The notes: generated by a model from the sequence alone, not told the origin. Shown: positions 3,001 through 63,700, numbered from the stretch's first letter. The stretch: 64,000 nucleotides of DNA from Zygnema circumcarinatum SAG 698-1b (GCA_037447605.1 CM074808.1:1736001-1800000), one strand, 5' to 3'. Made by a program: numbers and translations.

Positions 3001-5762
3001 CATCTCGAAATCACAATCTCCTCGAAAAGTCTGAAAAGCCTAGACTTGTACTTGAGAATTTTCACCCAAATTTTCTCGAAAAAATCATCAAGGAAGGTGA
3101 TGAAGTAGCTGCAGCTCTCCTGTTGCCGTGTCACGGGCCACAAATCGTATGTACCACCCAGTTTCTCCCTACAAGGGAAATGACCTCTCCACCTCGAAAA
3201 GGGCCCCTCGGCGCGCCTCTTCCCCTACACACACTCTTTGCAAAAAGCCTAGCTCCTTCTCAACTATGTCAATGTCTAACCCGCGGACCAGCCCCCTTGC
3301 AGCAAGCTGTTGCAGTCCCCTATGGTTTAGATGACCAAGTCTACGATGCCAGAGATTTACTGCACCCTCAGTTACGGCCATCACACCCTCATCTTCTTCT
3401 CTCCTATAATGAAGGTAATATAGGCCTCCCTTCTCGTACCCCTCAAACAGCCGCTTCCCCGACTCCAAGTGAGTAGCTACGCAAGACTTCTCCTTAAAGG
3501 TGACTTCGCACTCCCTCTACATACTTGGATCGACCGACATGAAGTCTTGTTTCAGATCGTGGTGTGAAGTACGCCACCATGCACAACCGCTTCTTTCTTT
3601 CTTCGTGAGATGATGCAGAGCCGTCATGAGGGATCATCTTACCACTCCTCCTTGTAACCCACCTCTCCGGGTTGCCGAAAGTGAAATTAAAACCGTCCTT
3701 CCAAGGTGTCAGCCGTGAGAACATTCGCTTGTCGCCACACATGTGCGGAGCTTTTGTGTCGACAAATTATGGCCGCCCCGATCCGCTAGAACCTGGATCT
3801 TCTTCCCAACAAAATCGCATCGTTCGGGCCAAGATGAGATTCGCCTCCACCGCCACTCTNCAATCCGTGCTCTTGTGGCCTCGCTTCTTGCATTTGAAGC
3901 AGATTCCCTTGAATCCCTTCTTGACGGATGACGATGCTCCCCCACCCCGATCTTGGGTGTTCTTGTTCTTGTAACAGCTTTGGCCGGTAGCGGGCTCCGC
4001 TCTACGCGACGTAACACGCCCTCGTGAGGGCGCTCTCACTTGCCCGCCCTCGGCGCACTCCTCTTCTACCCTTGTCGAGTGCAAAGGCCAACACCTTCTC
4101 CTCGTGCCCCTAACGCCTTGGACAGTTGTTCTCCTCCTGATCCTCCTCGCTTCACTTTGCTCAAGGGTCATCAATGCAAAGTTTGTTAGAACAGTCCTAA
4201 GAGCTGCACCGCTACATCGACCGCCAGGCAGTCCCCTAGAAACCGCTGATTTTATGGTCTCCCCTAACGTTTTGCAAATACTTAAGAATCTCTCCTCCAT
4301 TAGAGTATCAACCACCATATATTTCCTTCCTTCTTCCGAGGACATCTTCATTTTCCTAAGCTGCGTAAAGGCTGACATCGCTACGCTATCCTTTACGCCA
4401 TATCTCCTCTAAGCATCTCCACATAGCATGTGAAGTCTTAAGGTCATACAGCATGGAAGAGGGACTTCCCCTCACGCTCATGACGATCTGGGTGAGGGCC
4501 TTGTTGTCCTTGGTCCTCCATCTGGCGAAGCCGCCGTGGTTTTAACTCCCACTGCTGCCCGGGCCAGGTTCTCCCGCTGCACCGTGCTCTGATGGTGCCG
4601 CTAACGCACTTCAACGGTAATTCCCGCCCATAAGCAAAGGAACCGCCGCCATCTCCACCCCTGTAGTCCCAACCATCGAACGCTGATGCTGAACTTCACG
4701 CGGGTCCTCCTCGCCACCTTGGGCACAGATACCACTTGATGAAGCAGGGGTCTGCTCCCCACTTCCGGCGCCACCTCGGGTGTCGCCCTCCATTGGAACT
4801 TGAGTTCCCACGGATGAGGACATTCAAAACACTCAAANCTCTATCTTACTTCACCTACCTACCATAACAAATGAATGAAGTTACAAGACAAAGTACGGAA
4901 ATCACAATGAGAGAGAAAGTTAGGAGAAAGCTCTCACGCTCTAAAACTCCTTATAATAAAACTGTTCTCCCACAATGAAGTTCTCCCCACCACTTCAAGG
5001 TCCCTCTTACCACTACCACGCATTTCACAAGTGTGCAGCTCAAAGCAAAGACGAAAGCGTGTTCTGAGTAAAGACCCGGCATCGCGCATGCAGTAGTGTA
5101 GGTGATTACTTCCCATAGTAAACCACGCGACTAATATGAGGGCCCGCGACGCGTGACACAATATGTCACGCCGTCCGCCATTGCAAAACCCATGTACCGA
5201 AGTCCGAAAGGGCGCACGTAACAGCGACTAGCTAGCCGCCAGAAACCTACGGGCTGGCGCCGCACTCCAGTTCTGTCGGATCGCATATCCGGCCCGCATA
5301 GCTTTCGCTTTTTCGCGCTACGCTTCCTTCAAGAAGCCTTCGCCGGCTATCTCGCCGCCGCGACATTCAACCGCTGACCTACATCAGCGAGTGGTCCACG
5401 TATGCATTCTGCCACAATATCTTCCATGTCGCTTCCGCTGGGCCAAGAACTTTATGCCCATAAGCGGCGCTTCCGCTGTCAGCGAGCTCAATTCCGAAGT
5501 CGCCGTCCGCATTTCGCGCGAATCATGCCGCCGACCAATCAAAGCTAAGATTCGTATTCCACTTACTTGTGTCACCGCCGCGACCAATCAGCGCCGCTCG
5601 TTCGTACTCCGCGCACTCGCGGCGCACTCACCAAAGTCAGAGCACCGACATCACTAAATCTAAGAGCACTACGCCTAGCAGATCTCATGTTCTACAAACT
5701 GAGTACCACAACAAGTTAGTGTGTGCCATACAATGTCTAACTATCATACACTAACACTAACA
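1..5762 (-). mobile_element. Ty1/Copia LTR retrotransposon, frameshifted; 3' LTR cut by window start
   Basis: Minus-strand order gag (zinc knuckle CFKCKKRGHKSTD, 3767-4378), protease region (MCGDKRMF, 3494-3742), GAG-pre-integrase (LWHRRLGHLN, 3169-3468), integrase (HEFSAPYSPQSNGAAERVNRTL, 2567-2920), RT (YVGIYVDDL, 970-1398), RNase H (about 430-800). Integrase before RT means Copia. Direct repeats 1-410 and about 5337-5762 are LTR copies. Confidence 0.93.
4865..5762 (-). repeat. 5' LTR of the Copia element (low-coordinate boundary approximate)
   Basis: 5337-5762 aligns by eye with 1-410. Begins TGTTAG on the minus strand at 5762. Confidence 0.65.
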
Positions 5763-21725: not shown

Positions 21726-24700
21726 ATGGCTCCGTTTGCGGATGAGTCGGAGAACGGATCCGGCATTCCCCGTGAGTGGGAGGGATGGAGGGAGGGAGGG
21801 AGGGAGGGAGGNNNNNNNNNNGGGAGGGAGGGAGAGAGGGAGGGAGAGAGGGAGAGAGGGAGGGAGTGAGGGGCTTTCTGCATTGAGCGCTGAATTGCTT
21901 CCGGGAGGGTGTGCAGATCCGAAGAAGGAGATGGTAGAAATGGATTCGGGTGAGAAGAGGCTGCGCGAGTTGGGCTACAAACAGGAGCTCAAGCGCGGCC
22001 TGGTAATTGCGCGCTACGGGATCCGTAAAGCCTCACATTGCACCCTTAAAAGAGAACAATTGTCCTATAGAACTGGCGATTGAGAATTCCGTGTGCTGTC
22101 TAATTGACTGGTGATTGGTTCATTGATAGATGAATTTTTCACCCCAACTTGAAGTGGAAAGGGAAGAGGGAAGAGTAGAGAGAGGAGCCTCTCCCCTCTC
22201 AGCCACTCTCTTCTCCTCCGTTTCCGTGACATGGGAAGCGCGGCTATGTCCATGCAGAGTGGCTTTACAAACTATGGCTTCGCGTTCTCGGAGATCGGAG
22301 TGATGATGGGGGTCACCGGACTGTACGGCTATGGCTTCGCCTACGGAGGCCCCGTCGCGCTTTTCTGGGGATGGGCCCTCGTCTCTCTCTTCTCCAACTT
22401 CATCGGCGTCTCCCTCGGAGAAATCTGCTCTTCCTTTCCGGTGAGCTGCACTCCTGCCTCTGCTCTGCACTCGGTTTGAGTTTGAGTTCTGAAGCAGGGA
22501 GTGGGTTGGTACTGAAGCGGAGGGCGGTGGGGGTGCGCTGCAGACTGTGGGAGGCGTGTACTTTTGGGCGTACCATTTGGGGGGGAAATATGGCAATGTA
22601 TACTCCTGGATCACGGGCTGGTAGGGCCGCCGCTCTCTCAGCCCCCTCAGGCACTGTCAATTCAATTCAGTTTTTGCAGCAATTAGAATAGAATGTCTAT
22701 CGAAATGCTTGGCTGTGGTCTGAGACTGACTGTCAGTGATGTAGCTATAGTACGCGCTCGTGCTCTCACTCTCATTTTAGTTCTCAATCGCTCTCTCTCC
22801 CTCCCCATCTCTCTTCCTCTCTCTCCCTCTCCTCCGCCTCTCGGCCCCTTGCCCCTCTCTTCTAACTCCTTCCTCACTCTTCCCTCCTGTCCTCACCCCC
22901 TGCACTCCCTTCCTTCTCTCCTTCGCTCACATCCCCTCTCTCCCTCCTCTATCCTCCCTCCTCCCTCCTCCCTCATCCCTCCTCCCTCCTCCCTCCTNNN
23001 NNNNNNNCCCTCCTCCCTCCTCCCTCCTCCCTCCTCCCTCCTCCCTCCTTCGTCCCCTCCTTCTCACTACCACCTCTCTCTCTCGCTTTGTCTCTCATTT
23101 GCCCTGTCCAAAATTGGCACGGGAGCTTAATGGCGATTGGGACGTACATGAGAGAACACGTTTCTCTCCTCTCTCTTTTTTTCCTCTCCTTCTCTCACTC
23201 TCCCTCCATCTCCTCCGTCCTCCCTCCACCTTCCTCCCTCCACTCTCCTTTCCCGCCCTTCTCTCCTCTTCCCCACCCACCCTCCTCTCTCTCTCTTGCT
23301 CACTTGCTCTCCCTCTCTCTCTCTCTCACAAACACACACTCTCATTATATGCCGTAATTTTCACCCACCTCTCCCTCCCCCCCGGATCTGCGGTTTCGCA
23401 GGTTCAACCTCGTGGCCGGCTTCGCGAACGTGGCGGCCGTGGACATGATCTGCGCGGACCTGATCGGCGAGATGGCGCTGCTCGCGACCGGCGATTGGTA
23501 CCCCAACAAGGACCAAATGCTCGGGATCTTCTGCGCGGTGCTCGCCACGCACATGGCGCTCAACCTCATCGGTCAGCGCCCGCCCGCAACCCAACCCGAC
23601 CCAACCCAACCCAACCCAACCCAACCCAAACCCAACCCAACCCAAACCAGTCGCAGGCACGCAGGGGAGGTCGAGGGGCACTCAAGCTGCATTGGAATGA
23701 AACGTGCATCCGAGACTGAGTGCTTGTAGAGGCGGCTGGTGAAGGACTCTCTTTTTAGTCTGAAATCAAGCTGTTTGTGGGCAAGATAGTCGCTAAGACT
23801 GACTGGAAATGCATTTTCACTAAGAGTACTTCGATAATTTAAGCCTTGTCTGTTTATATTCTTAGCTGCACGGCTGTTCTCGGTGTTTCCTTGTCCCTGT
23901 TCGAATGACAATGACTTGAGGAATTGTAAGGTTTAAATATCGACAGCATTTTGTAATTTATCGCTCCTGAACGCTAATGTGACTACTTTGTCTGCCCTTC
24001 ACAGTCATCCCAGGTATCAGTAACAGCGTAGCCTGGTGACAGATTTGGAACGTCCTGAGGTCAATTTTAGCGAGGCATTGAGCCGAGCATAAACTCATCA
24101 TTTGTGCCTCTCTCGAATGCGCAGGCCTCTCGATCGTCGGACCGCTGGAAAACATCGCCATTTTTTGGGACTTTTTTGGCTGCATCATCGTTTCGATCAC
24201 ACTGCTCGCGGTTGCTCCGACGCATCAGTCGGCCGACTTTGTGTTCACCAAATTCATCAGCGACCAAGCGCCGGGGATACACAGCAAGCCGTACATCTTT
24301 TCGCTGGGTCTGCTCTCTTCTCTCTTCACTCTTATCGGTAAGCGTTGACAAGCCAACTCCTCCAATGATAATTCGTAGATTTTTTCACGTCAGCTATCAC
24401 AGCGAACTTAACTTTTTGCCCTGATTAAACTTCGATAATATAGTACGCCAATCAATGCAATCATCTATTTACCCGACTCTACCGTAAAATCTAACAGGTT
24501 GAGAAACAAAAAGAAATTAAAGATTTTGGCATATTTAGTCTTTGAATTTTTTATTTTTTTTTGAATTCGCTTTCTTAAATCAAAAAAATTTTGACCTAGA
24601 GTGTTCAAAGTTTAACCCTATTCAATAAGATTGGGAATTGAGAAATTAAGTAAACTCGTTTCTCAATTTCTCAACCTGTTCGGTTTTACAGTAACTCCAT

Positions 24701-26711
24701 TCGTTACCCTTACCCCTACCCCTAACCCTAACCATAACCCTAACCCTAATCCTAACCCTAACCCTACCTCCTCGCTGACGAGTCGCAGGGTACGACGCGG
24801 CGGCGCACATGACGGAGGAGACGAAGGGCGCCGACAAGACGACGGGGATGGCCATTTGGCTCGCGGTCGTGGTCTCGTCCCTCAACGGCTTCCTCTACAT
24901 CCTCGCGCTCACCTTCAGCATCCAGGGGGTCCGCCTCCTCCCCCCTGCCCCTGCAGTTAGGCGCACGGGAGGGAGAGGGGAGGGAGGAGGGAGGAGGGAA
25001 AGGAGAGAGAGGGGCAAGATCAAAGGGAGAGTAGCGATGGAGGCAGAGGAAAGAGAGGAAGTGCGCAGCTTTGCGAGATGAGGGTTAGGGTTAGACAAGG
25101 TTGGGAACGGGGGAAGCATGAGAGGCTGACGTGAATCTATGGGCAGTGAACATGATCATCGTATGTTTAGAGATTTGGCCATACGCGTTTTCTTAACTGT
25201 AGGGTTTGGAAAAGTCGTTTTTTTTTCTGATATCGTTTTTTAGGATGGAAACCAGAGGTCAAGAGATTGTCTGTAGGCCGTGCGGTTTACAAACTCTGGA
25301 CAAGGCTCCTCGCTTCAAGCTGTAACTGATTGGTTGCATATTGTGCGACTATACGAAGAAGGGAGAAATCGAGAGTAATCAGTAGTGCTCGGGAAACGTT
25401 CCGAAGATTATTCTTATGGGTAGAGAGAGGGGACGAACTTGACGTTTGAACATTATTCGTACACCATTCTGTGCAGGATCCGTTACATTTGCTCAACAGC
25501 GACAATGAATCAGGAGGTTATGCCGGTGCTCAAATTTATTACGATGTGTTCAAGGCGCGATATGGCAGCGGGAAGGGAGGCGTGGCTCTTCTCATCTTCC
25601 CTACCGTGGCTGCGTGGTTTTCCGGCATGTCTTGCCTTACAGCTGCATCCCGCATTGTAAGTATGCCTCCTTCCTGCTAAGCAACATCACCGCCAGCACA
25701 CCCAGCTAAAAAAATCTCCTCCGTCTGCTCTCATCCTACTCTGACATTTTTGAATCTCCCGGCAAGTACTCGGCTTGACTTAGGGTTGCCCTTCTGCTGA
25801 CCTCTCTCTCCTCGTGCAAATCGTGCAGTGCTTCGCATTCAGCAGAGATAGGGCTCTTCCAGGATGGCAGCTATGGCGCAAGGTCACCCCCTACACGGGC
25901 ACCCCCATGATGGCGATCGTCCTTGTGGGAATCTGCGCTTTCGGCTTTGCGCTGCTCTCACTCACGGGCCCCACTGCCTTCGCTGCGGTCACCTCTGTGG
26001 TGGTTATCGGCTTCTACATCTCATATCTCATTCCCATCTTTTTGCGACTCACAGTCGGCCTTCGGTCATTTGTGGTACGGTTCACTCTCGGCCTTCCAGG
26101 GTCCTGCATCATTGAGCCTGGAAGCATGTTTCTTGAGTGAGGTCGATAGGGACTCGGCTATATGCCCTGTAGGTGTGCTTGCATGTTTTTTTTTTGTCTA
26201 TTTTCTTCTATTTTTGAGTTGTCTTGTCACCACTAATTGCAAAATTTATGGGGTCTGGGTGCTACAGAGAGGACCCTTCCATGCAGGCCCATTCTCCCTT
26301 GTCTTTGGCTGGCTGTCCGTGTTTTGGATCATAGCTCTTGTGGTGATTCTTTGTCTCCCTGCTGGTGAGTTCGTACTCTACTTTCCTCCTCCAAAGATCA
26401 CTTTGGAAAGCTTCCTGCTTTAATGCTGCCTTTTTTTTGGTCTACAATTTTCCCAACTGCAATAGCAGATGACTATGTGAGTATGCCATTCCTATTGGAG
26501 TCAAAGCTATCTGTCGAAACACTGCTCAATCTGCTCATTGGCACTGTCTGCAGTCTATCCCGTTGACGCCAGCACTCTCAACTACGCCCCGATCACTGTT
26601 GGCGGCACCATTATAATTGCTGCTCTTGGCTGGATAGGCGCATATTTCTGGCGGCCTGGGTTTTTCAAGGGGCCGGTCCCGACTTTAGAGTCTGAGGAAA
26701 TCAAGCATTGA
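21726..26711 (+). CDS. BAT1: BAT1-like amino acid/amine permease (APC superfamily, ACT family), 11 exons, 531 aa
   Basis: Exons 21726-21771, 21917-22002, 22258-22440, 22544-22620, 23402-23571, 24125-24337, 24789-24928, 25477-25656, 25829-26074, 26268-26364, 26554-26711 sum to 1596 nt in frame. Motifs DSGEKRLRELGYKQELKR, GGPVALFWGW, EICSSFPTVGGVYFW, GYDAAAHMTEETK, FAFSRDRALP, LNYAPI. Confidence 0.93.
23586..23648. repeat. (CCCAA)n microsatellite in a permease intron
   Basis: Read directly from the sequence. Confidence 0.9.
24712..24767. repeat. (CCCTAA)n telomere-type hexamer array just upstream of a 3' splice site
   Basis: cctaaccctaaccataaccctaaccctaatcctaaccctaacccta; acceptor AG at 24787-24788. 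Confidence 0.9.
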
Positions 26712-27907
26712 GGGAGGAGAAATCAATGAATAAGGACAGACATGACATATTAGGCAGTGCAGGAAGTGGGGGGGGGGGGGGGGATGGAGAGGGTTAGCTT
26801 TGGCGACAGAAATGGGCCGGAAATAACATTAGGGTTAGTAGCCGTTCGTAGGTGTGGGAGCAGCTGTGGTAGGGCTTCCAGCGAGTCCGCTCCTCTGAAA
26901 AGTAGGGCAGCGGAGCCTTCCGCAGCTCCTGCCACAATACTGCAATACAGGTTATGGTGTTTCTGTGTTGGTCATTGTTTTAGTTATTGCAGCCAAGCCA
27001 AGCTAGTGCTGGCTGGAAGGAGGACAATACTCCAGCTTTTGTATTGTGACATGTTCAATATTTTATTGCTGGCATGCAGTATTTGCAGCCACTGTAAACC
27101 AATCCTCCCCAAAGCCGCTGCTCTGAAGGCCCCTCGCTTGGCTCAGAAAACAATTACAATTAAGGAGCTATTCCCAAAGGAGGCCCCACCGCTGCCTGCC
27201 TCCTCGTCCGAAAAAACGCAAAATGTCTCTGTTCAATTTCACGCTGGTGACACGCGATTCGCAGTTCAGTGAGCCACCACGGAACTGCCTGCACGGAAGC
27301 GGTCTGCAGAGCCCCCCCTCCCATTGGCGGAGCCGATCACGTGGGCCCTCCCCCGGGGCCCACGTGTCCTCCCTCTCTTGTCCCTCCTCACCTTCGGACA
27401 TTTCGTACATAGGAGTTACTGTACTGTACAGTAAGCGAAGCTCTCACTTTTCTACTCGAAAGGGGCACTCTGCCTCTGCGCCTTTGAGCTCGCCTGGAAG
27501 CCTCAGGGACTGCAGCGCTGCGGGCTGGAGCAACGTGAGGTGAAGGAGGGGGCGAACACTGGGCCCTCTTTTTTTGGCGGAGATGTTTCTCTGAGTTTCT
27601 AGCTGCCGGAGTTACGGAAAACATGGAAATCTGGTTTTACTAATGCAAAGTGTTGTGTTGCGTGAAAGTTTTGGTGGCAGACATTGACGAGGATACTGGT
27701 TGTTGTTTGCATGGAGAAAGAGTGAAATTTGAAGAAATTTTGGTCGAGGAAATGCATTTGGTTTAAATTGGAAGTTCAATACATTGGCATTCAAAGAGGA
27801 GTCGCGTGACTTCACGGACTGGTATGAAGCTGCAGGCCTGAGAAATTTCTGCTGGTGCGATGGAACGATTTTGCAGGAACTTTGGACAGTTGTAAAGAAG
27901 TTCGACT

Positions 27908-30900
27908 ATGGCTAGCTGGACTGGGAATGGACCTGTGCCGGAGAAGCTGGAGGTCAGAAATGTCCTCATCGCCGCCTGCCTGTGGATTCTTGAGCGAGAC
28001 ATTATGCTGGGATAGAAAATTTGACGAAAAAATTGTGCTTGTAGTGGTGGAACTCGAGCATCGTTCAGAACAGTCTGAATAGTGAATGGTTCTCTTATAA
28101 ATGGAATTCTGCTCTGATGAAGCATGGCTACCTATTAGATGCGCACATGCCGTCAAGTTGTGTGTTACGCGTATTTATTTTTGCATTAAGCTGGAGAAAT
28201 ACATTGACGCAGAAAGCTGGCTTTCAGCTCAGAAAGATAATCAGAAGCTTACAGCGACGATTTGGAAATATTTTAGACGGATAAAGCATCATGATGTGAA
28301 GATGCGATGGAAGTTGCAATACAACAATTCGTTCGCAAATGCTGAAGCCTTTCTCTAATTTTATCTGCAGTCGCTTGAAGTATTTTTAACCTTTGCGAGT
28401 TGAGTGACTTGATGCCCGAGAGATCAACATATCCGTAGCATATCTCACCACTGTTTCACCGTCGTCAGGCTAAGAACTTTGGAAAACGGTCGGTCGAGTT
28501 TGCTTCCCTTTCATTTCACTTACTTGAGGCGCCACTCCGTGCTAGCACTGCAGGATCTCCAAAGTGTCCTCCAATCGAAGGGAGTAAAATACGCCATTGG
28601 CAGCTTTGTGGACATACACGGCTGCTGTAAGGGCAAGGTATTCTTTTCCTAGCTATTGAGAGCAGCTGATGAAGCAGCACTTTTCTTCTGAAATGTGGCC
28701 AAAGAATTCTCAGAAGTGGTTAATAGCTCAATTGTTTCTAATTTCTTGAATTGATTAAACGGCAGATAGAGATAGATCCATGATTTAGTCGGTGGTTGAT
28801 CAAATTCACGCATGCCAAAAGCGAATTGTACGACACTGTCTCTAAACGGTGACTTGGCATCAAATCTCCATTGGGGTATAGCATTACTGTAAAGCAAGGA
28901 CCTAATATAAGTATAGTCTAAGGGTGGCTAAAAAGCCTAAAACGTTTGCCGCATGGTGCGCCTATTTCGTAACTCCTGTTTTATATATTCTACAAAGAAG
29001 AAAAATGGAGATGTCTTCAAGTTCTCGATATAGGACAGGTGCCATTTGGTGAAGGTCTGGTGTGACACGACACGGGACACCGCCAAACCTTATTTCAATC
29101 CATTTCTTGGCACGCTCAATATTACAATGGCATTCCCACCTATCTAGTGCATCATTGACCTTGATTGTATTTGTGCCGCGCAGATTGTTCCTTTGAGCCA
29201 CTTTGTCCATATGTTTGAAGGTTCAGAGCTATTTACAGGTGCAGCATTAGATGGTGTTCCTCAGGAGGTTTCTGACGAGGAAGTGGCGACCATGCCCGAT
29301 GCAAAAGGGTAAAGTCTGAGTACAATTTCCATTTCAATAGAGTACTTTATGTCTAATGGTCTATGTCTTCGTGACTTATGTTAGTACTTGCTCCCGTCGT
29401 TCTTCCAGTTGTGTAAATGACTGCCGGCCTAGTTGTTGAGATCTCAACGAGACAAATAACAGCAATGCAGCTTGTAGCCAAAGTTCGCTGACTTCCACAT
29501 TGCAGCTTCAACGTTATTGCCACATTGATGATGATGAAGGCAATAATTCCCATACTGTCAAGCACAGTCTTGCAGTTTTTTGAAAGGGAAAAATGATTAT
29601 GGCAGGTGCACGATTCTTCCGTGGAATCGAGAAATTGCATGGTTCCCAAGTGACCTTTACTTGTCTGGTAAGTGGTCTTGCATCGCGGCTCTTACAACCA
29701 AGCACATGACTTGTGAGAAAATGAAATTGTTTTGAAAGTTTGGAAAGTCCACGCTAGATCCATTAAGCGGGCCAGACCTGATCCTTAATGACCCTGATAA
29801 GAGTGGGAAAATGCATGTGAAATTGCTGTTTATTGCAGGTCGACCATTTGAAGCTTGCTGCCGCACCATTTTGAAGCGTCAGCTAGCAGAAGCTGAGAAG
29901 TTAGGCTACATGTTTAATTTGGGTATCGAGACAGAATTTTTCATTCTTAAAGGTGCGTGAATCCTTAGCCCTCGTGAGGCAAGCTATCTTCAGTTACTCG
30001 TTATAAAACACGCTTGTGAGCCAGTAGTTAGTTATCCAAGTTATCAACACATGATGCACACATCATCACATCATACTGTCAAATTTCAGTATGCAAGATG
30101 CTGCACGTCAGGCTTCCTGCCCCTTTTCTCTGTAAAACGGAAACAAAGCCTCTCACACGCAGTGAAGTAACTTGTGCCATCCGGCTCTCCTCAGATCAGA
30201 CCAACCCGATGGCAAGTTTGTACCTATAAGCGACCGAGACACTCTAGACAAGCCATGCTACGATGTTGTGGGCTTTTTGGACAACTACAAGTGGATGGAT
30301 GAGATTGTCCAGGCCATGAATGAGCTCGGATGGGATGTCTATTCCTTTGATCATGAGGACGGGAATGGGCAATTCGAGACGGACTTTGCCTACAGGTGCG
30401 CCCTCAAGGCGATGTGCCATGTTTGCATAGCACACAGGTTTTTCCACCTTGAGTAGCTTCAAAAGCAGGAATGACGTGCAATAACTGTCGTTCGCAGTTG
30501 CAATCAGTTGCTTTTCAAAATGATCGATTTTACACTGCGCTACGACAATCACTTGATGTGACGTAACAAAGTATTTTTGGATGTGGCAGCGATGCTTTGA
30601 CCATGGCTGATCGTTTCACTTTCTTCCGCCTAATGGTGAAGGAGATAGCCCGTAAACATGGCTACTTTGCAACCTTCATGCCCAAACCCTTCAAGAACCG
30701 AACTGGTAAGTAGGGCAAAGTCCAGTTTACGTCAGCAGCAGAAGCTAATGCACGTCTAATCAATGAGCCAATGCCATTTTTATTTGCCGGCAATGATCAG
30801 CTGATGAATGTGGTAGGTTACGGATTGGTATTGAAGCACCTTACAACCGGGGGATGTTGGCAGGCAGTGGAGCGCATTACAATATGTCGCTGGCGGATTC

Positions 30901-32252
30901 AAAGACAAAGGAAAATCTCTTTGAATGTAAGGATGATCCTCGGGGCTGCGGCCTTTCAGAACTTGGATATCATTTCATTGCCGGCATTCTGAAGCACGGT
31001 CAGGCTCTCTCGGCCGTCATCGCACCCACTGTGAACAGGTGATTCCCAAACCTAAGGAGAAGCGAACGCCCTGAAATATTTCCACGTCCAAAAACTTGGA
31101 AGGAAATTGCTGAGCGGTCTGCCCTCACCCACTCCTGAGCTTCCCACTTTTTTAGAAAAGTCGGAGGCGAGTCTTCTGCACCATCCATGAATCGCAACAT
31201 CATGAAGTCAGATATGCTATATGCTCGCTAAAACGCTGCGTTTGTTGTGGATTGCAGCTACAAGCGGTTAGTGGCACAGGGCAGCATGTCTGGCTTCACA
31301 TGGGCCCCGGTCTATGTCTGCTACGGCAACAACAACCGCACCAACATGCTCCGTATTCCGCTAGGTGGTGGGCGGGTGGAATGTCGGGCTGCAGATATTG
31401 CTACTAATCTGTACCTTGGTGAGACCTAAACGTTCTGAGGATTTCAGCAAGATGAATGCATCACATGAATGAACTGCGTGCAAGATTCCCCCGCACACGC
31501 AATAAAAATTTAAGCATGAAGGGAGCCTTGGTGATTTGTACGATTGGGTCACGTGACCTTTATTCCCTCATTGTGAGCAAAATGAGCTGCAATGGGCGAT
31601 TGGTATAACCTGTGCATTGACGTGCCTTTGTAGGGAAAAGTTCGCAATGCATCAGGGAATCAGGATACGCAGCATCATTGCAATTGACCTGCCAATTCTT
31701 GATTCAAGCGGGTGCTGCAGACGATGTTCGCGCAATTCTCTTTTGTCTTTCTGATTAGATGGAGTGACTATGTGGGTGCAGGAGCTGCAATGATCTTGGC
31801 GGCAGGCCTGGAAGGCGTCCGGGAGAAATTGGACCCTGGACAGCCTCATACTGAAAACATGTACAAAATGACTCTCGAAGAGCTCAAGGAGCAAAAGATC
31901 GAAACACTCCCACGCACTCTTGGAGAAGCTGTTGAAGCCTTTGCAGGTATGATTACTCGAGGCTGCCTGCTTGCAACTCCTATGGCTCCATGCGCTCGTG
32001 ATTGTAGTCAGTCAGTAGGATCTTTTCACCAGTCCGGTTGTGCTTCATGTAGTATGGTACACCTGTGAACAGGTTGAATCGGTTCTAAAGTAGTGTGTTC
32101 ACTGCTTTCGTGTGGCAGCGGATCCGCTGAGCAAGGAAGTATTCGGAGAGCAGATGTTCAAAAGCTTTGTGGAGTACAAGTCCAGGGAGTGGGCGGAGTA
32201 CCACACGCACGTGTCCGATTGGGAGATCGAGCGGTATCTCAAGTTCTTTTAA
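27908..32252 (+). CDS. glnT: Bacterial-type 'type III glutamate-ammonia ligase' (GlnT / gamma-glutamylmethylamide synthetase-like), 11 exons, 458 aa
   Basis: Exons 27908-27952, 28554-28637, 29184-29308, 29606-29667, 29839-29952, 30200-30395, 30590-30705, 30864-31038, 31258-31418, 31782-31946, 32119-32252 sum to 1377 nt with no internal stop; all introns are GT-AG. Motifs [115 protein letters not shown]. Exon 1 is the least certain. Confidence 0.9.
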
Positions 32253-42500: not shown

Positions 42501-45500
42501 CTGGACAAGCCCTGATTTTGGATGAAGATGAGGGAAGACATGGCGATGGAGATGAGACGAATAATGTGGAGAAGGAGGGGAGAGGCGATGTGCAGAGGGG
42601 GTCAGCCACGAGTCCCAGTAAGGTGGTCCCTGCTCGCTCTCACTCCACCAAGGGAGATCCAAACTTTATACAGAACTACTACAAGGCAAGTGCTGCACTT
42701 CAACCGCCATTGTCACCTCAAAATCATGTCATCCTGTTTGCAGATCTTAGTGTTTTACCATATCCTCGACGTGTCTGCCGGCCGTACAAGCTAATAAACC
42801 CATTTCTGATGTTCCCTGCAGCATTCCCGCCTTCATTTCATAGGCACATGGCGGAACCGCTACCAGGCAGCCCATGGGTCGGCAGGTCCCCTGCCTTTTC
42901 CAGAATCTCTCAGAGAGGGGGAGAGGGAAATGCACGGCAGCCATGGCCGCAGTGGTGAGCAGCCCCCAGTGCCAAAGGTTGGCTCGGCGGAGCGGACCAT
43001 TCTTCATATTGACATGGACTGCTTCTTTGTGTCGGTCGTTGTACGCAATCGACCCGAGCTCGTGAATGAATCCGTGGCAGTGTGCCACTCAGACAGCTCG
43101 AGAGGGACGGCAGAGATTTCGTCAGCCAACTATGTGGCCAGAAAGTTTGGAGTAAAGGCGGGGATGTTTATGCGGGAGGCTAAGTCGCGATGTCCAAACC
43201 TTGTTGTTCTTCCGTATGACTTCGAGGCATATCAAGAAGTAGCAGATCAAGTGAGTGAGAGCGCATGTGGAGAAAAGCAAAGTAGCTGTGTGGTCTGGAC
43301 TAAGTCTCCTCTGCTGTTTCTATGCAGTCAGAGCCTTTCCCATTTTTCTCTGCTTCATGAAAGTGCATTGTGCAGTCTAAGTTGTTTTCGTTTAACGGTC
43401 TTGTTGACACCAACTCGTAAATTTAGGTAAGAGGCATCCTCAGAATGCAAATGCAATCCAAATCAGATTTTGGCGAATCTTTCAGCGAGAATGTGGTTTT
43501 CTCTTCCGTCTGCTGCACCCAGGTGTACTCTATTCTCCACCGTCACAGCAGCGTTGTGCAGGCCCTCAGCTGCGACGAGGCATTTCTTGATATCACCGGC
43601 TTGGGAGATGCAAACGAAATCGCTCTCTCCATCAGAAAAGAAATTTTCCAAACGACCCGCTGCACTGCAAGTGCTGGGATCGGCCCCAACCTGCTTCTCG
43701 CCCGCCTTGCCACCCGCAGAGCAAAACCTGACGGCCAACTTCAGGTGTCACTCGCTCAGGTGAGACAGAATCACCACTTTCATCATTTTTTTTTTTTTAG
43801 TTATTGACAAATATCCTGTCTGTTTGCTGCAAGTTACGCATCCACGACCAGCATATGCCAAATTTTTTTTTTTTTTTCCCTCTGCTCTTTCACCCACAGG
43901 CTTCCGAGTTTGTAGCAGACCTGCCGGTTGCAGACCTGCATGGGGTCGGCTGGGCACTTCGTGACAGACTGCACTCCAAGGGAGTGAAAACCTGTGCAGA
44001 TTTGCTGCAGCTCTCACTTGAAACCCTTCAACGCGAGTTTGGGGAGAAAACAGGAGACATGCTGCACTCGTACGCGCGGGGGAGAGACTCGCGGTCCGTG
44101 CAATCTGCGCAGGAGAGGAAGTCTATTGGAGCAGAGGTCAACTGGGGAGTGAGATTTTCAAACGATGGCGATGCACAGACCTTTCTGCAGGGACTTGTAG
44201 AGGAAGTTTGTCGGCGTCTCTCAGCTGCGCGAGTGAAGGGGCGGACCCTCTGTCTTAAAGCAAAGAAGCGGAAAGCTGATGCTCCCAAGGAGCCGGCCAA
44301 GTTCATGGGTTGTGGGGCATGTGATAATTTGAGCCGCTCTGCGAATCTTGGTGCTGCGACAGATGACCCCTTAGTGTTGTTGAAGGTAAGCAGGAGGCTG
44401 TATGCAGCTCTGCAGCTGAACCCTTTGGAAGTGAGGGGGGTGGGCCTGCAAGTGACAAGGCTTGATTCTTCCTTGGGCGGAGGAAGGAGTGGTTTTGCTG
44501 GAGGGGGCTCCTTGCAGGGCCGCCTCTCCGCACCTTGGGGTTCAGGGGAGCAAAGGGGGAGAGCTGGGAGGGCTGAGGGAGGGGATGTGGGTGGTGATCC
44601 GCATTCAGAAGCAGAGGAAGCTGAAACGGTTATGAACTCTGAGCAGCAGCCGGAGCTGGGAGGAGGAGTGGAACATGAGGAGTTAGAGGTCAGGGAGGCA
44701 GTGAAGAGGCGTGAGGAGGGTCTGGGGGTGAGGAGTGTGGAGGTCATTCAAGGAGAGGAGGGGAAAGAGGAAGTGGAAGGGAGGGGCATGGGGTTCAGGG
44801 AGCAAACAAAAGGGGAGCGATTGACAGAAGGAGGAAATTTTCAGAGGGAGGGAGATGCACGAGAGGAAAGCTTGCAGGTGAAGGATAAAGCCGTAATCCA
44901 GGCCCCCTTCCTGCCTGCGGAGGGAGTATCGGGGGAAGCAGGTCCAAGTATGCAGCAGCGGGTTAAAGAGTCTCACGGACTACCGTCCGTTTCTCAGCTT
45001 GATCCAACGGTCCTTGCAGAGTTGCCTGAGCAGATCATTGCGGAGTTAAAAGCAGCTTACGACGCAGACTGGGGTTCGGATCAATGGAACCTTCGAAAGC
45101 AAGAGGTCGTAGGGAGATGTGAAATGAAGAGGCATTGTGAAAACCTTGAAGGTATGAGAAATGGTGGGGAGACGGAGAGGGAGGAAGAGGAGGCTTTGCC
45201 TCATCAACTCATGCCAAACGGCTCTATGATTAACCCGAAGGATAGTGAGGGGACGGTGTGCTTGGATGTCGCACTAGCGAATGGCAGTAGGCAAACAGAA
45301 ATGGATAGGGGGAACCGTGATATTACCGAACACGCAAGCGTGGAAGTTCTCCCACCAGCTTCTCAGGTAAAGTGGTGAACCTCGGAACATACTTTTGAAC
45401 ATACATATGCTGAAGAAGTGCTCGATGTCTGGCAGTTTCTGAGAGGGGACGAAAGCTCTGTCGAGAAGAGGGAAAGATGAGGTGTGTACTCAGGTCTCCT

Positions 45501-54280: not shown

Positions 54281-55090
54281 TTAACCTCCGCATCCCCCCC
54301 CTCCACATCCTCCTCCTCCGCATCCTCCTCCACCGTCGTTATCAAAGGCTTCACCCAACGCCAGCCCTCCAAGTCCTCCAAGAAGAAGACCGGTGCCCAT
54401 ACCCATCCCTCCTCCGCCAAAACCACCTCCGCCTCCGCCAAACCCTCCTCTGCCGCCGTATCCTCCATAGCCCCTCCTCTGCGCATACACAACCTGAGGC
54501 TGACCATACCCCGGCTGGTAATATTGCGGAGGAGGTGCTCCCGGGTATCCATTAGTAGGAGGATAGGGGTAGTAGCCCTGCGCGCCTCCTGCATACCCTA
54601 CTCCCTGCATGCCCCCCCCATACGTAGACCCATGCGGAGCCTGTGGAGCGGTAGCAGCTCTCGCCCTCTCCAACTGCTCGCTGGAGAATTTAGGACCCGC
54701 TATCTTCACAGACACGTTGACCCTCCCCTGCACGCGCCCACTCGGCCGGTACACGCTGTACGCGCCGAAGTGAAGCTCCTCCGTTTTATTCACGGCCTGC
54801 GATAGAGGCACTTGCGCTGTGCCGACAGGAGAGCCCCTGCACGCCCCCGTGCTGTAAATCCTGATCACCACCGTAGGATTTGCGCCGAGCAGGAGGTTCT
54901 CATCGACGGTGAAGATGAACTGCTCGTTCCAGACGGGCTCTGTCTTGCTGGTGCTGCATGCCTGCGAGGCCTTCCGCTGGTTGGTGCCTGCCACCCCGAC
55001 CACGGCGGCAGGCGCCTGCGTCCCGAAGTGCTTAACTTTCTTCAAATCTGTCGCCGAAATTAGGTTCACCGTCACTGCTCTGTGTGCCAT
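54281..55090 (-). CDS. SRC2: SRC2-like C2-domain protein with Pro/Tyr/Gly-rich tail (intronless, 269 aa), paralog 1
   Basis: ATG at 55090. VTVNLISATDLKKV..PVWNEQFIFTV..PVGTAQVPL..YSVYRPSGRVQGRVNVSVK followed by PPPQYYQPGYG and GMGTGLLLGGLGGLALG, the SRC2 architecture. Confidence 0.85.
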   Translation of the reverse strand: MAHRAVTVNLISATDLKKVKHFGTQAPAAVVGVAGTNQRKASQACSTSKTEPVWNEQFIFTVDENLLLGANPTVVIRIYSTGACRGSPVGTAQVPLSQAVNKTEELHFGAYSVYRPSGRVQGRVNVSVKIAGPKFSSEQLERARAATAPQAPHGSTYGGGMQGVGYAGGAQGYYPYPPTNGYPGAPPPQYYQPGYGQPQVVYAQRRGYGGYGGRGGFGGGGGGFGGGGMGMGTGLLLGGLGGLALGEAFDNDGGGGCGGGGCGGGGCGG

Positions 55091-55519
55091 TGGTACCTCC
55101 TCTCCCCGTGAAAGACAGGCCCGTTCGGTAAGCGAAACAAGAAAAACTATTGGCAAACTGCCTCCGTGTTTGACTTCCCTGCGCTGCGCTGTGCTGCCCT
55201 CCCCTCCCCCCCTCTGCACGGCTCAGGCAGACAGTCTCCGCCCCTCAGAGGGCCACTTCCCGGCTTTGAAGGCAGAGGGCGCCGGGGCGGGGCGGGGCGG
55301 GGCGGGCGGTCGCGTGGCGCCCCACGTGGCGGGGGCGCGCCTTCGTGCGAAGGTGGGAGCCGCGCGTGGTGGCTCCCTCCGCGGACTGCGGGCTCAGGCC
55401 GCCACGTGGCCGCGCGTCGAGGTGCCACGAGGCGCGCAGGGGCGGGCGGGCGGCTTCCGCGCGGGGGCGGGCGGCTTCCGCGCGGGGGCGGGCGTTGACC
55501 GCTCGCTGACCGACCGCGC

Positions 55520-60731: not shown

Positions 60732-63700
60732 ATGGCTGCCGTGCGCGCTCCCGTGCCGCTGCCGGCTGCGAGCTCTAACTGCCCTCCTCTTCCGCGCGGG
60801 AAGAGCTCAATTGCTAGCTATGGAGGAACTGACTGCTCTTCTGATCGCGCTGCACTCCGCGCTACGCCTGCAAATCCTGCTGGAAGGTCTGATAAACATG
60901 TAGGACTAAGGCAGGATGGATTGCGTGGTGGTCATTTGCATGCCTGGAGAGTCTGCGAAGGTGGATCCGCCGTGTGCCAGCAGGAGCTCCAGGGCCTCAG
61001 GAAAAAGGCAGGCCGGCGGGAGACTTCAGTGCGTTGTGAGGCGGTTGAGAAAAGCGCAGTAGTGGAGGCTACTAGAAGTGCTCAAAAGTCAAACGGATTC
61101 AGTGTAGTTATGAAATTTGGCGGCTCTTCAGTAGCAACGGCAGAGCGCATGCTTGAGGTGGCTTCTCTGGTTCAAAAGTTTCCTGAGGAGTCGCCTGTAA
61201 TTGTTCTGTCCGCTATGGGCAAGACAACCAATAATTTGCTTAAGGTAAACTCACATATTTGGCCTGTGCATCTTCACAGCTAGATGGAGGGAGGACCTTC
61301 GAGAATCCTTTAAGCACTCGTTCAATTGTCAGGAATTCTTAAACGCATTCAATTATTGTCATAAAAGTAGTAATTTTCTCCCTGTTAGTTATCACTTACC
61401 GGCCATCACAATCTCAAACTTAATCCTTTACTTCTTAAACCGTAGGGTTGTCAAGGGACTTGAGTTAACGATTTGGAGGAATTAACTGCAAAGCTAGGTT
61501 AATTTGGCTCGCTTATGAAGTCTGTAGTTATTCAATTTCAATCATGTCAACTGATTTCGTTTTGCAGGCTGGAGATGCGGCAGTAAGTTGCGAACAAAGT
61601 CGCTGCCGCGATATCCAAGAGCTGCATACCATAAAGGAACTCCATTTGCAGTAAGTTCACAAGTCATGTATTCGACTTATTCAACTCAAACCATTCATTG
61701 TGTTTTTAGCGTTTTTCTTTGGCTCTCCCAATTTTGTCAGACGCTCTCTATGCATGGATGTTTTTAAAAATACAGTTTGCTGAGTTATTTCATCTTTGTT
61801 ATGGTGATAATGATATTGATAAAATAGTTAGCTCTACCCGTGGCTGTGTAGGCAAACTGAAACAAAACGACTGAATGCGTTGCATCGTGGTTTGTTTCAG
61901 AACTGTGAAGGAGCTTGGCTTGGATTCCACTATTGTAGATGGTATGTCTTTTATGCCACATCCTTCACTGTACCAAAGAACCTACAAAATAACAGCGTCC
62001 CTGTATTTCATTAAGGACTGACTACCAGAAGCTTTCAAGGACTTGTACGAGTATGAAGTTCTTACTTTTTTAGTTCGAGTCGCAGTGCGTTGTATTGCAA
62101 GTTGTAGCATTTACATTTGAGTCATTCTTTGGTTGTTTTAGACTCTACTTGCTCATGGAACGCATCAAGGGGGAATTTCAGAGCTTTTGGAGGAGCTGAG
62201 TCAACTATTGACTGGGATTTCCCTCATGAAGGAGCTGACACTGCGGACCAAAGACTACCTGGTATCATTTGGAGAGCGTTTATCCACACGGCTCTTCTGC
62301 GCTTTGCTTAACAAGCAGGGTGTAAAGGCTCGCCAGGTGATTTTGTTTATCAGAGAATTATGGTGAAGACTCCCTTCAATTTGGTTGTGTGCCATCACTC
62401 TCCTCAGCATGGCTTTAAGGGTTTTATGTCTAGTGCATGGCTGCCAGCATACAATGTGTGGATGGGTTGTGTCTTAACCAATACTTTTGCCTTTTCCCCT
62501 CAATGAAAGGCGTGGCTCTCAATGTGTTGAGCCCAATGCTACATTAGCGTCCGCCTGCCTAAACGCAAGAGGATTGTGGTAGACACTGACGGAACTTATT
62601 ATGAATGATCGCAGTATGACGCATTCAAGATTGGGTTTCTGACTACGGACGAGTTCACCAATGCTGATATTCTTGATGAGACTTACGGTGCGGTGTCGGA
62701 GCACCTGAACAGAGAATGGCAGGAAGATCCAGCCATTGCAGTTGTTACAGGATTTCTGGGCAAGGTACGTTCCCTCGCCTAAGTATCTGGGGAAAGAATA
62801 CGGATTCAGGTGGGCCTTTTGTACGGAACTCTTGTGGCGTCGATAAACTCATGAATGCCACATCATAGAGTATGTACAGGTTAGAGCAAGGTGCAATCAG
62901 GGTCTCTCGGAATCGTTTTGTCTTTTGTGATCTTCTTGTTGATCTAGCCATTAATTACCCATAGACAGCAATATCACCATTGTCGAAGTTTTAATCATTT
63001 TGGACAGTCAGCCACACTTCTGCTATAGTTCTGGTCATAGCAGCTGTGGTTGGGGTTTCTTATGGAGGAAATTTTGTAACCTTTGCCTGCCCTTGCTACT
63101 TTGAAAGTGAACGATGAAGTTAAGGAATATTTGTAAACTATGATATATTGATCAATGGAAAGGGAGGATGCAGGGCCGAAAGACAGGTGCGATTACCACA
63201 CTTGGTCGTGGTGGCAGCGATTTAACAGCCACAGTTATTGGCAAGGCGTTAGGCCTTCGAGAAATACAGGTAACTACTGTTGGCCTTTAGTAGCAGGAAA
63301 GGCACATGAAGGGGGTGACTCCAGCACGCACATGAATGTTTTTGGTGATTGAGTGAATGACGTGCTGCAGGTTTGGAAAGACGTCGACGGAGTGCTGACC
63401 TGCGACCCAGGAATCAGACCACAGGCCCTCTGTGTGCCTTTCCTGACTTTCGATGAAGCAGCTGAACTCGCATATTTTGGGGCTCAGGTATATCATCAGT
63501 CTTTTGAAAGTAGTACTACAGATAATCATTGGAATTATCTTTCATCGTTAACCACGAAATCTGAAGATGTGAACGAGGGGGACAATGCAAGTTAAGATCA
63601 GAGATATGTTATGACTATCTTTTTGTAAACATGAGTTCTTTGCTGTGCTTGTGTACTTCAACTTTTAATCAATACGCACTATGCCCTCCCTGTGTATTTT

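Follow-up and report, generated by a model that had tools for sequence, protein, structure and literature searches.

The 64,000-nucleotide window analyzed here comes from the streptophyte alga Zygnema circumcarinatum SAG 698-1b (GCA_037447605.1 CM074808.1:1736001-1800000) and carries two real, expressed nuclear genes in tight tandem, both on the plus strand. The first of these (positions 21726-26711) encodes a permease of the ACT family (TC 2.A.3.4, APC superfamily) and the second (27908-32252) encodes a GlnT/GmaS-type (TIGR03105) glutamate-amine ligase. Both gene models were built by hand from a reading of the 21.5-32.8 kb region and then checked by a script; they reproduce exactly the coordinates of the initial annotation, which had placed the end of a 531-aa permease at 26711 and the start of a ligase on the same strand at 27908. 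The spacing of 1.2 kb given there applies to the coding regions, with 1,196 nt separating the permease stop codon from the ligase ATG; the transcripts come closer than that, as the 5' untranslated region (UTR) exon of the ligase gene reaches position 27093 or earlier.

Gene models of the permease and the ligase

The permease gene encodes a protein of 531 aa (ATG at 21726, stop codon at 26709-26711) in 11 exons (21726-21771, 21917-22002, 22258-22440, 22544-22620, 23402-23571, 24125-24337, 24789-24928, 25477-25656, 25829-26074, 26268-26364, and 26554-26711); all 10 introns have GT-AG ends, and the spliced open reading frame (ORF) is open throughout. Two assembly gaps fall within introns. One (21812-21821) is located in a GGGA-rich repeat of intron 1 (21772-21916), with the frame open across exons 1 and 2, and the other (22998-23007) is in a CCCT-rich repeat of intron 4 (22621-23401). 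Exons 3, 4, and 5 cover positions 15 to 75, ∼76 to 102, and 103 to 158 of the TIGR00907 model, respectively, so that the coding sequence is continuous over intron 4 and no exon is hidden in the second gap. Exon 1, which contributes 15 codons of the unconserved N terminus, is the sole piece of the model that neither RNA nor homology supports; with this exon misassigned, translation would begin at a Met residue in exon 2. Introns 5 and 6 also contain telomere-like repeats, of the AACCC type and (CCCTAA)n, at 23590-23650 and 24700-24770.

The ligase gene encodes a protein of 458 aa (ATG at 27908, stop codon at 32250-32252), likewise in 11 exons (27908-27952, 28554-28637, 29184-29308, 29606-29667, 29839-29952, 30200-30395, 30590-30705, 30864-31038, 31258-31418, 31782-31946, and 32119-32252), with GT-AG ends at all introns and no targeting peptide. 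The coding region is preceded by a 5' UTR exon that starts at or before 27093-27114 and extends to 27539, where it is spliced over a GT-AG intron (27540-27876) to the exon with the ATG. This leader contains an upstream ORF on the plus strand (27223-27895; 111 codons), which begins at the sole upstream ATG (27223) and ends with a TAA codon at 27893-27895. The upstream ORF is rich in Ser, Pro, and Arg codons, spans the UTR intron, and is in the same frame as the main ORF, with 12 nt between its stop codon and the ligase ATG. The possibility that the ligase extends N-terminally to the ATG at 27223 was considered and rejected because of this in-frame TAA, which closes the upstream ORF and leaves the ligase without an N-terminal extension or transit peptide.

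Transcription across the gene pair

Six public RNA runs from a single organism contain 39 to 58% of the sampled words of the 25450-31440 region. RNA contigs from four runs, belonging to three studies, were placed on the locus and show GT-AG joints at every predicted intron of that stretch, i.e., introns 8 to 10 of the permease gene and introns 1 to 8 of the ligase gene; loose contig ends agree with the end of permease exon 7 (24928) and with ligase intron 9. The leader joint, 27537>27875 (cut +2), is present in runs X1, X2, and X5. In run X5, this joint and the 27950>28552 joint agree in depth (12.8) and in their 76-nt side, and record 22 (592 nt) is long enough to contain the two joints, which are thus probably located on one contig. 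A minor alternative acceptor at 30195, seen only in run X2, would disrupt the ligase frame. The RNA differs from the assembly by one extra A after 27210 (runs X3 and X5) and by two substitutions, C>T at 31373 and G>A at 31386, both in a single low-depth X2 contig.

The permease 3' UTR covers 26712-27131 on the plus strand. Contigs joined to the permease exons end at ∼26763, and others span 26786-27131 and 26795-27414. A run of 16 G residues (26768-26783) coincides with the sole contig break between the two genes (26764-26785), and the transcribed sequence is nearly continuous from the permease stop codon to the ligase gene. The pentanucleotide TGTAA occurs once between the genes, at 27093-27097, and is a candidate poly(A) signal by analogy with chlorophyte algae. 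The 3' end of the permease transcript and the 5' end of the ligase transcript abut or overlap, since position 27093 is already within the ligase leader, and on the permease side the sole TGTAA and the final contigs fall within 27093-27131.

All four runs also contain contigs of a spliced antisense transcript over ligase exons 7 to 10 (30587-31946, minus strand). These contigs are unspliced through 30587-31175, thereby retaining intron 7 and a portion of intron 8, and then continue from 31918; the skipped stretch (31176-31917) begins with CT and ends with AC, corresponding to GT-AG on the minus strand. Run X2 contains two more CT..AC joints, 30671>30838 and 31175>31415. The antisense transcript may regulate the ligase.

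Family assignment of the permease

Family scans were run exon by exon, on the in-frame exons of both proteins. For the permease, the ACT family model TIGR00907 was the best one for every scorable exon, with eight exons matching colinearly over positions 15 to 472 of 482. The exon-wise scores sum to 248 bits, a total that, being added up over exons, falls short of the cut-off for the whole protein (598.3 bits). Exon 9 alone scored 37.8 bits against PF13520 (AA_permease_2), the cut-off for which is 27. The protein thus has TIGR00907 as its best model along its whole length and PF13520 above the gathering score, which assigns it to the ACT family, as had been annotated initially. TIGR03428 ("permease, urea carboxylase system") was the second-best model on three exons. 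A search of the Protein Data Bank with a permease exon returned no sequence match, and an ESM Atlas look-up with exon 9 returned only generic amino acid permease clusters.

Active site of the ligase

TIGR03105 (the GlnT type) was the top model on eight scorable ligase exons and was tied with GlnA (TIGR00653) on exon 10 (49.7 versus 49.9 bits). The matches were colinear over model positions 2 to 434 of 435, with a rough exon sum of 431 bits (whole-protein cut-off, 469.6), and a 76%-identical orthologue (L029, from FACHB-502) scored 597.6 bits; the ligase also matched PF00120. GlnA scored below TIGR03105 on all other exons, and the model of the gamma-glutamylputrescine synthetase PuuA (NF045547) did so on every exon. 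The only strong matches among solved structures were the GmaS enzymes 9qur and 7cql, with ligase exons scoring 42 to 54 bits against the GmaS chains.

Residues were mapped through the 7cql alignments to the numbering of RhGmaS (chain number equals residue number plus 20), and their roles were taken from the work on that enzyme (PMC7948447). The ammonium site of glutamine synthetase (GS) is replaced, with Thr in place of Asp50' and Ala in place of Ser53' (loop FTGAA), and the catalytic Glu residue of the GS Glu flap (Glu327) is Trp (GFTWAP). The residues that are kept, namely, Tyr147, Asp177, Glu179, Glu186, Lys30', Glu124, His235, Arg312, Arg317, and Glu325, include the catalytic Asp177 and Glu186 and the metal- and ATP-binding residues. 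With Asp50', Ser53', and the Glu-flap Glu all replaced and the GmaS catalytic set retained, the protein is, judging from its sequence, a GmaS-like amine ligase and not a GS, in agreement with the GlnT/GmaS-type assignment of the initial annotation.

The amine pocket differs from that of GmaS at two of its seven residues: the Gln175 and Asn188 residues shared by the two solved GmaS enzymes are Ser and Asp, respectively, in the algal protein. The predicted pocket is accordingly reduced in size at one of these positions and gains acidity at the other. The Ser and Asp pair is found in all 89 scorable members of the clade and in 36 of the 150 family representatives, and the pocket signature, YSFDHED...QFE.DF, is present in the algal protein. 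The ligase can therefore be placed in a distinct "Ser...Asp pocket" subfamily, whose link to guanidine, described below, appears not to have been reported.

The same residues bear on the idea that the protein is an extra GS isozyme, which would assimilate ammonia (e.g., from guanidine or urea) next to an unrelated permease. GlnT was first described in Rhizobium as a GS isozyme, the NCBIfam name of the family is "type III glutamate--ammonia ligase," and the bacterial orthologues co-occur with enzymes that release ammonia from guanidine. However, the cyanobacteria that carry this ligase also have a normal GlnA, and Asp50', Ser53', and the Glu-flap Glu of GS are all absent from the algal protein. 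GmaS does have weak ammonium activity, but replacement of the GS ammonium residues in that enzyme is accompanied by a much higher Km for ammonium (PMC7948447). On balance, a role as a GS isozyme looks quite improbable.

Cyanobacterial origin of the ligase

A profile-free search of the full database with ligase exon 6 returned matches with identities of up to ∼70%, and those that were looked up were bacterial. Two samples of orthologous loci were then compared, one of 80 GTDB loci, seeded with L003, and an independent one of 80 metagenome loci, seeded with the algal exon 6. L003 is a cyanobacterial Logan contig of 1209 nt that is 76% identical to the algal ligase and contains several GCGATCGC repeats typical of cyanobacteria; its ligase homology begins abruptly at residue 135 and has a frameshift, which marks it as a truncated or chimeric copy. 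Over ∼446 aa, the spliced algal ligase shares 70 to 76.5% identity with the proteins that Leptolyngbya, Phormidesmis, Nodosilinea, and related cyanobacteria encode in the GTDB loci; its identity is ∼67% to proteins from Arthrobacter and Planctomonas and 54% to a Verrucomicrobia-type protein. The metagenome sample contained only intronless bacterial genes, the best of which was 78.5% identical to the algal ligase. In a maximum-likelihood tree, the algal protein is sister to the whole cyanobacterial clade, with SH-aLRT values of 88 to 90 that are not decisive. The initial annotation, which spoke of an acquired ligase, is supported in that the ligase is of a bacterial, specifically cyanobacterial, type.

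Among 78 bacterial orthologues, 166 alignment columns show no variation, and the algal protein matches 165 of them. Sequence comparison thus depicts a domesticated cyanobacterial-type gene, with 10 coding introns and one leader intron, that is under strong purifying selection and that arrived by either endosymbiotic or later horizontal transfer. Given the identity of 70 to 78% and the near-complete retention of invariant columns, the ligase is likely to have the same function as its bacterial orthologues. The alga's own protein and eukaryotic homologues were sought with profiles that combined a bacterial scaffold with the algal exons, and the matches listed were all bacterial proteins, in a search of low power that is not evidence of absence. 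Three short high-identity matches of the representative search (P0054, P0276, and P0015) were considered as possible exons of related algae and rejected as frameshifted or truncated bacterial genes.

Guanidine-related gene neighborhoods in bacteria

Neighboring gene families were named with Pfam and NCBIfam in the 160 orthologous loci, with some smaller families left unnamed. The guanidine-I riboswitch (Rfam RF00442) scored above the gathering threshold in six of seven loci scanned, and a covariance model built from these matches was then run on both samples. The riboswitch was found within 10 kb of the ligase gene in 73 of the 160 loci (40 of 80 in the GTDB sample and 33 of 80 in the metagenome sample). 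In 13 loci it is located no more than 400 nt 5' of the ligase ORF, and in 31 more it lies 0.4 to 4.5 kb upstream on the same strand. These 13 directly upstream riboswitches occur in Nodosilinea/Leptolyngbya-type cyanobacteria, and one of them is at 9068-9211 of L059, from Nodosilinea nodulosa strain PCC 7104, in which the riboswitch is followed by the ligase and then by the binding protein, permease, ATPase, and Rieske oxygenase. The identity of the algal ligase to the proteins of riboswitch-carrying loci is 65 to 78.5%, which, together with the pocket signature, brings it into a provisional guanidine-regulon ligase subfamily (signature plus at least 65% identity to riboswitch-linked bacterial members). 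In a Phormidesmis priestleyi locus (L025), Rfam group II intron domain matches were seen at 4912-5041, ∼4.5 kb from the ligase gene.

The commonest neighbors of the ligase are genes for ABC importers, assigned by NCBIfam to the NitT/TauT group, with a binding protein of the SsuA or "urea-carboxylase-system" type. In the GTDB sample (n = 80), a two-copy BPD-type ABC permease was found in 54 loci and an ABC ATPase in 46, followed by Rieske oxygenase (19), isochorismatase (18), creatininase (16), SDR (14), HypA-like (12), HypB-like (11), and arginase family (10) proteins. In the metagenome sample (n = 80), the counts were 44 for the binding protein, 21 for TetR, 14 for urea (= guanidine) carboxylase, 13 each for HypB-like proteins and creatininase, and 11 for the arginase family; a BiuH-like hydrolase is also among the bacterial neighbors. 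The frequencies of the ABC membrane subunit (54 of 80) and, in the other sample, of the binding protein (44 of 80) uphold the earlier statement that bacteria pair an amine transporter with a GS-like ligase.

A urea/guanidine carboxylase of 1,208 aa is encoded beside the ligase at 8695-12321 of L150, and likewise in 13 other metagenome loci. Other loci carry, in place of the carboxylase, arginase family and HypA/HypB-like genes, which resemble those for a GdmH-like hydrolase and its nickel chaperones. The ligase subfamily thus accompanies both known routes of guanidine degradation. Experiments have shown that GimABC, a NitT/TauT system whose genes adjoin gdmH, imports guanidine (PMC12704784); in bacteria, the ligase subfamily belongs to riboswitch-controlled loci of guanidine assimilation and is usually encoded immediately beside an importer of this GimABC type. 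APC permeases are predicted guanidine importers in the riboswitch operons of nitrifiers (PMC11410670, PMC12186494).

These neighborhoods speak to the substrate of the ligase. In the initial annotation, the pair had been cast in terms of methylamine and the N-methylglutamate pathway: it would import methylamine, ethylamine, or polyamines, gamma-glutamylate them in the manner of GmaS, and feed an N-methylglutamate-type pathway encoded elsewhere. This view draws on the fact that the best solved-structure matches are the GmaS enzymes 9qur and 7cql, on the presence of the catalytic residues of GmaS and of its Trp at the Glu-flap position, and on the ability of GmaS enzymes to accept several small amines (PMC7948447). 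Its difficulties are that Ser and Asp stand in for Gln175 and Asn188 across the clade of the alga and the cyanobacteria, that guanidine genes and riboswitches, and no mgsABC or mgd genes of the N-methylglutamate pathway, are found among the named neighbor families of the 160 loci (some small families being unnamed), and that TIGR03105 outscores the gamma-glutamylputrescine synthetase model on every exon. The methylamine interpretation is hence unlikely to be correct. With a pocket that differs from that of GmaS and with orthologues in guanidine loci that lack named mgs or mgd genes, guanidine-type nitrogen fits the ligase better than methylamine does. In the literature, no paper was found on GmaS in algae or on a link between GS-like ligases and guanidine riboswitches, in a search that did not extend to subscription journals.

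A possible uptake-ligation module

The question that follows is whether the permease and the ligase work together. Of the two-gene module for organic amines that had been proposed initially, the type of ligase and the pairing of ligases with importers in bacteria have held up, the methylamine substrate has not, and a chance adjacency is still a live explanation. It is tenable, though somewhat short of probable, that the pair forms a coupled uptake-ligation module for guanidine or a related small organic-nitrogen cation. In such a module, the neighboring ACT permease would take the role of the bacterial ABC importer, with guanidine or a small organic-nitrogen cation close to it as the substrate. 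The ligase, a cytosolic enzyme, could then use ATP to link the imported compound, or some nitrogen nucleophile that it gives rise to, to glutamate at the gamma-carboxyl group. Ligation would trap or activate the compound, with later hydrolysis by enzymes encoded elsewhere; speculatively, acylation would ease the hydrolysis of guanidine, a very stable compound, e.g., to glutamine and urea. Abutting or overlapping transcription units would permit co-expression of the two genes.

The opposite view, that the adjacency has no metabolic meaning, is just as tenable as the module and likewise somewhat short of probable. The permease would then be a general amino acid, GABA, or choline carrier of the BAT1/Uga4 type, the substrate of the ligase would be internal or supplied by other transporters, and the spacing would reflect either chance or the capture of expression by a transferred gene inserted into the 3' flank of an active host gene. 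The overlap of the ligase leader with the permease 3' UTR has the look expected of such read-through expression capture. On the other hand, the bacterial orthologues of the ligase nearly always share an operon with an importer, which appears to tie its function to uptake, and green algae often cluster nitrogen assimilation transporters with their enzymes. A rough estimate from typical gene counts (not from this genome) puts the chance that a random neighbor is a permease for organic-nitrogen cations at ∼1% or lower. The isolation of the pair, whose flanks are free of recognizable genes over ∼20 kb upstream and ∼9 kb downstream, also counts in favor of a module, as do the predicted role of APC permeases as guanidine importers in nitrifiers, the rank of TIGR03428 as the second-best family of the algal permease, and the production of free guanidine by plants and green algae (PMC11018352).

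Several observations weigh against coupled uptake and ligation. In the 160 bacterial loci, no ACT or APC permease is located near the ligase, so the pairing has no direct precedent among the orthologues, and ACT permeases are ordinary and common in the plant lineage, both points being what a meaningless adjacency would lead one to expect. Many kinds of partner would have passed as plausible and a single genome was examined, which weakens the chance estimate. A tblastn search of the window with all bacterial operon neighbors matched only the ligase, with no hydrolase or other pathway gene, leaving the pair without further pathway genes in the window; it also agrees with the earlier remark that the window has no N-methylglutamate synthase or dehydrogenase genes. 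The RNA contigs do not establish that the two genes share a transcript or are co-regulated, and contig depth is no ranking of expression. The low-power profile search described above returned no eukaryotic counterpart of the ligase. Finally, since the subfamily co-occurs with complete guanidine-degrading pathways, the substrate of the ligase may be not guanidine itself but a compound formed later in such a pathway, e.g., ammonia or an amine.

A scan of the window with the guanidine-I riboswitch covariance model gave no match. The provisional context of the guanidine-regulon subfamily, i.e., an adjacent riboswitch and GimABC-type importer, is thus not seen in the algal window, where an ACT permease adjoins the ligase instead. 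The nuclear, intron-rich copy of the ligase behind an ACT permease is new, and the evidence for coupling of the two is circumstantial. An intriguing but unlikely extension of the module is that the Ser/Asp-pocket ligase is a glutamate-guanidine (or guanidino-compound) ligase, representing a third, undescribed mode of ATP-dependent guanidine activation beside guanidine carboxylase and GdmH. Derived from cyanobacteria and wired to a host ACT importer, possibly through overlapping or shared transcripts, it would constitute the first guanidine assimilation module of the plant lineage.

Other features of the window

Pfam scans of long ORFs found nothing upstream of the pair (1-21.5 kb) or at 32.3-41.8 kb. 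The first downstream domains belong to a Y-family DNA polymerase (IMS_C and HhH domains; 43804-45378, plus strand) unrelated to the pair. Further long ORFs, also unrelated to the pair, contain a C2 domain and an amino acid kinase domain, at 54281-55219 (minus strand) and 60732-61283 (plus strand).

Implications

Free guanidine has only lately been recognized as a metabolite; it is made by plants and green algae (PMC11018352), and its fate there is unknown. If the permease and the ligase indeed form a module, they would be the first candidate genes for the handling of guanidine-type nitrogen in the plant lineage, and the unstudied ligase subfamily, which many of the guanidine regulons of bacteria contain, would point to a missing enzyme of guanidine metabolism. 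The alga would then have placed a fully domesticated cyanobacterial gene, complete with 10 coding introns, a leader intron, an upstream ORF, and antisense RNA, behind a host transporter, providing a clear example of how eukaryotes can rebuild operon-like units of uptake plus enzyme. If the adjacency is due to chance, there would still remain a well-documented transferred gene and a new observation on the bacterial gene context.

Comparison with known systems

Compared by family model, exon by exon, the algal permease resembles plant BAT1/GABP and yeast Uga4, Hnm1, and Tpo5 in being of the ACT family on all scorable exons and in having a typical length of ∼530 aa. The combination of an importer with a GS-like ligase recalls PuuP-PuuA of E. 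coli, in which a putrescine importer of the APC superfamily is encoded beside gamma-glutamylputrescine synthetase. The two systems differ in substrate and lineage, and the PuuA-type model NF045547 scores well below TIGR03105 on the algal protein.

With GmaS (RhGmaS, 7CQL; 9QUR, "glutamate--methylamine ligase"), the algal ligase shares the TIGR03105 and PF00120 matches, the Trp residue at the Glu-flap position, the absence of Asp50' and Ser53', and the catalytic and metal/ATP residues. It differs from GmaS in having Ser and Asp for Gln175 and Asn188 in the pocket, in being encoded by a nuclear gene with 10 coding introns, in its cyanobacterial identity of 70 to 78% over the full length, and in the linkage of its orthologues to guanidine genes rather than to mgsABC/mgd. 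In the arylamine pathways for aniline and 1-naphthylamine, a GS-like ligase glutamylates the amine before a Rieske dioxygenase acts on it (PMC11335346). A Rieske oxygenase is similarly located near the ligase in ∼37 of the 160 bacterial loci, but it is GbcA-like, and no such gene is found near the algal ligase.

The orthologues of the algal ligase sit in cyanobacterial loci of the kind that combine the riboswitch with GdmH-GhaAB and GimABC (PMC12704784). The published Synechocystis guanidine locus (PMC12704784) has no GS-like ligase, however, and the algal window lacks the other genes of such loci and, as that of a eukaryote, the riboswitch. Comammox Nitrospira, with its operon of a riboswitch, an APC permease, and a guanidinase (PMC11410670), resembles the alga in that a permease of the APC superfamily partners an enzyme of guanidine metabolism. 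In Nitrospira that partner is a guanidinase rather than a ligase, and the algal permease is of the ACT type (TIGR00907), with TIGR03428 as the second-best model.

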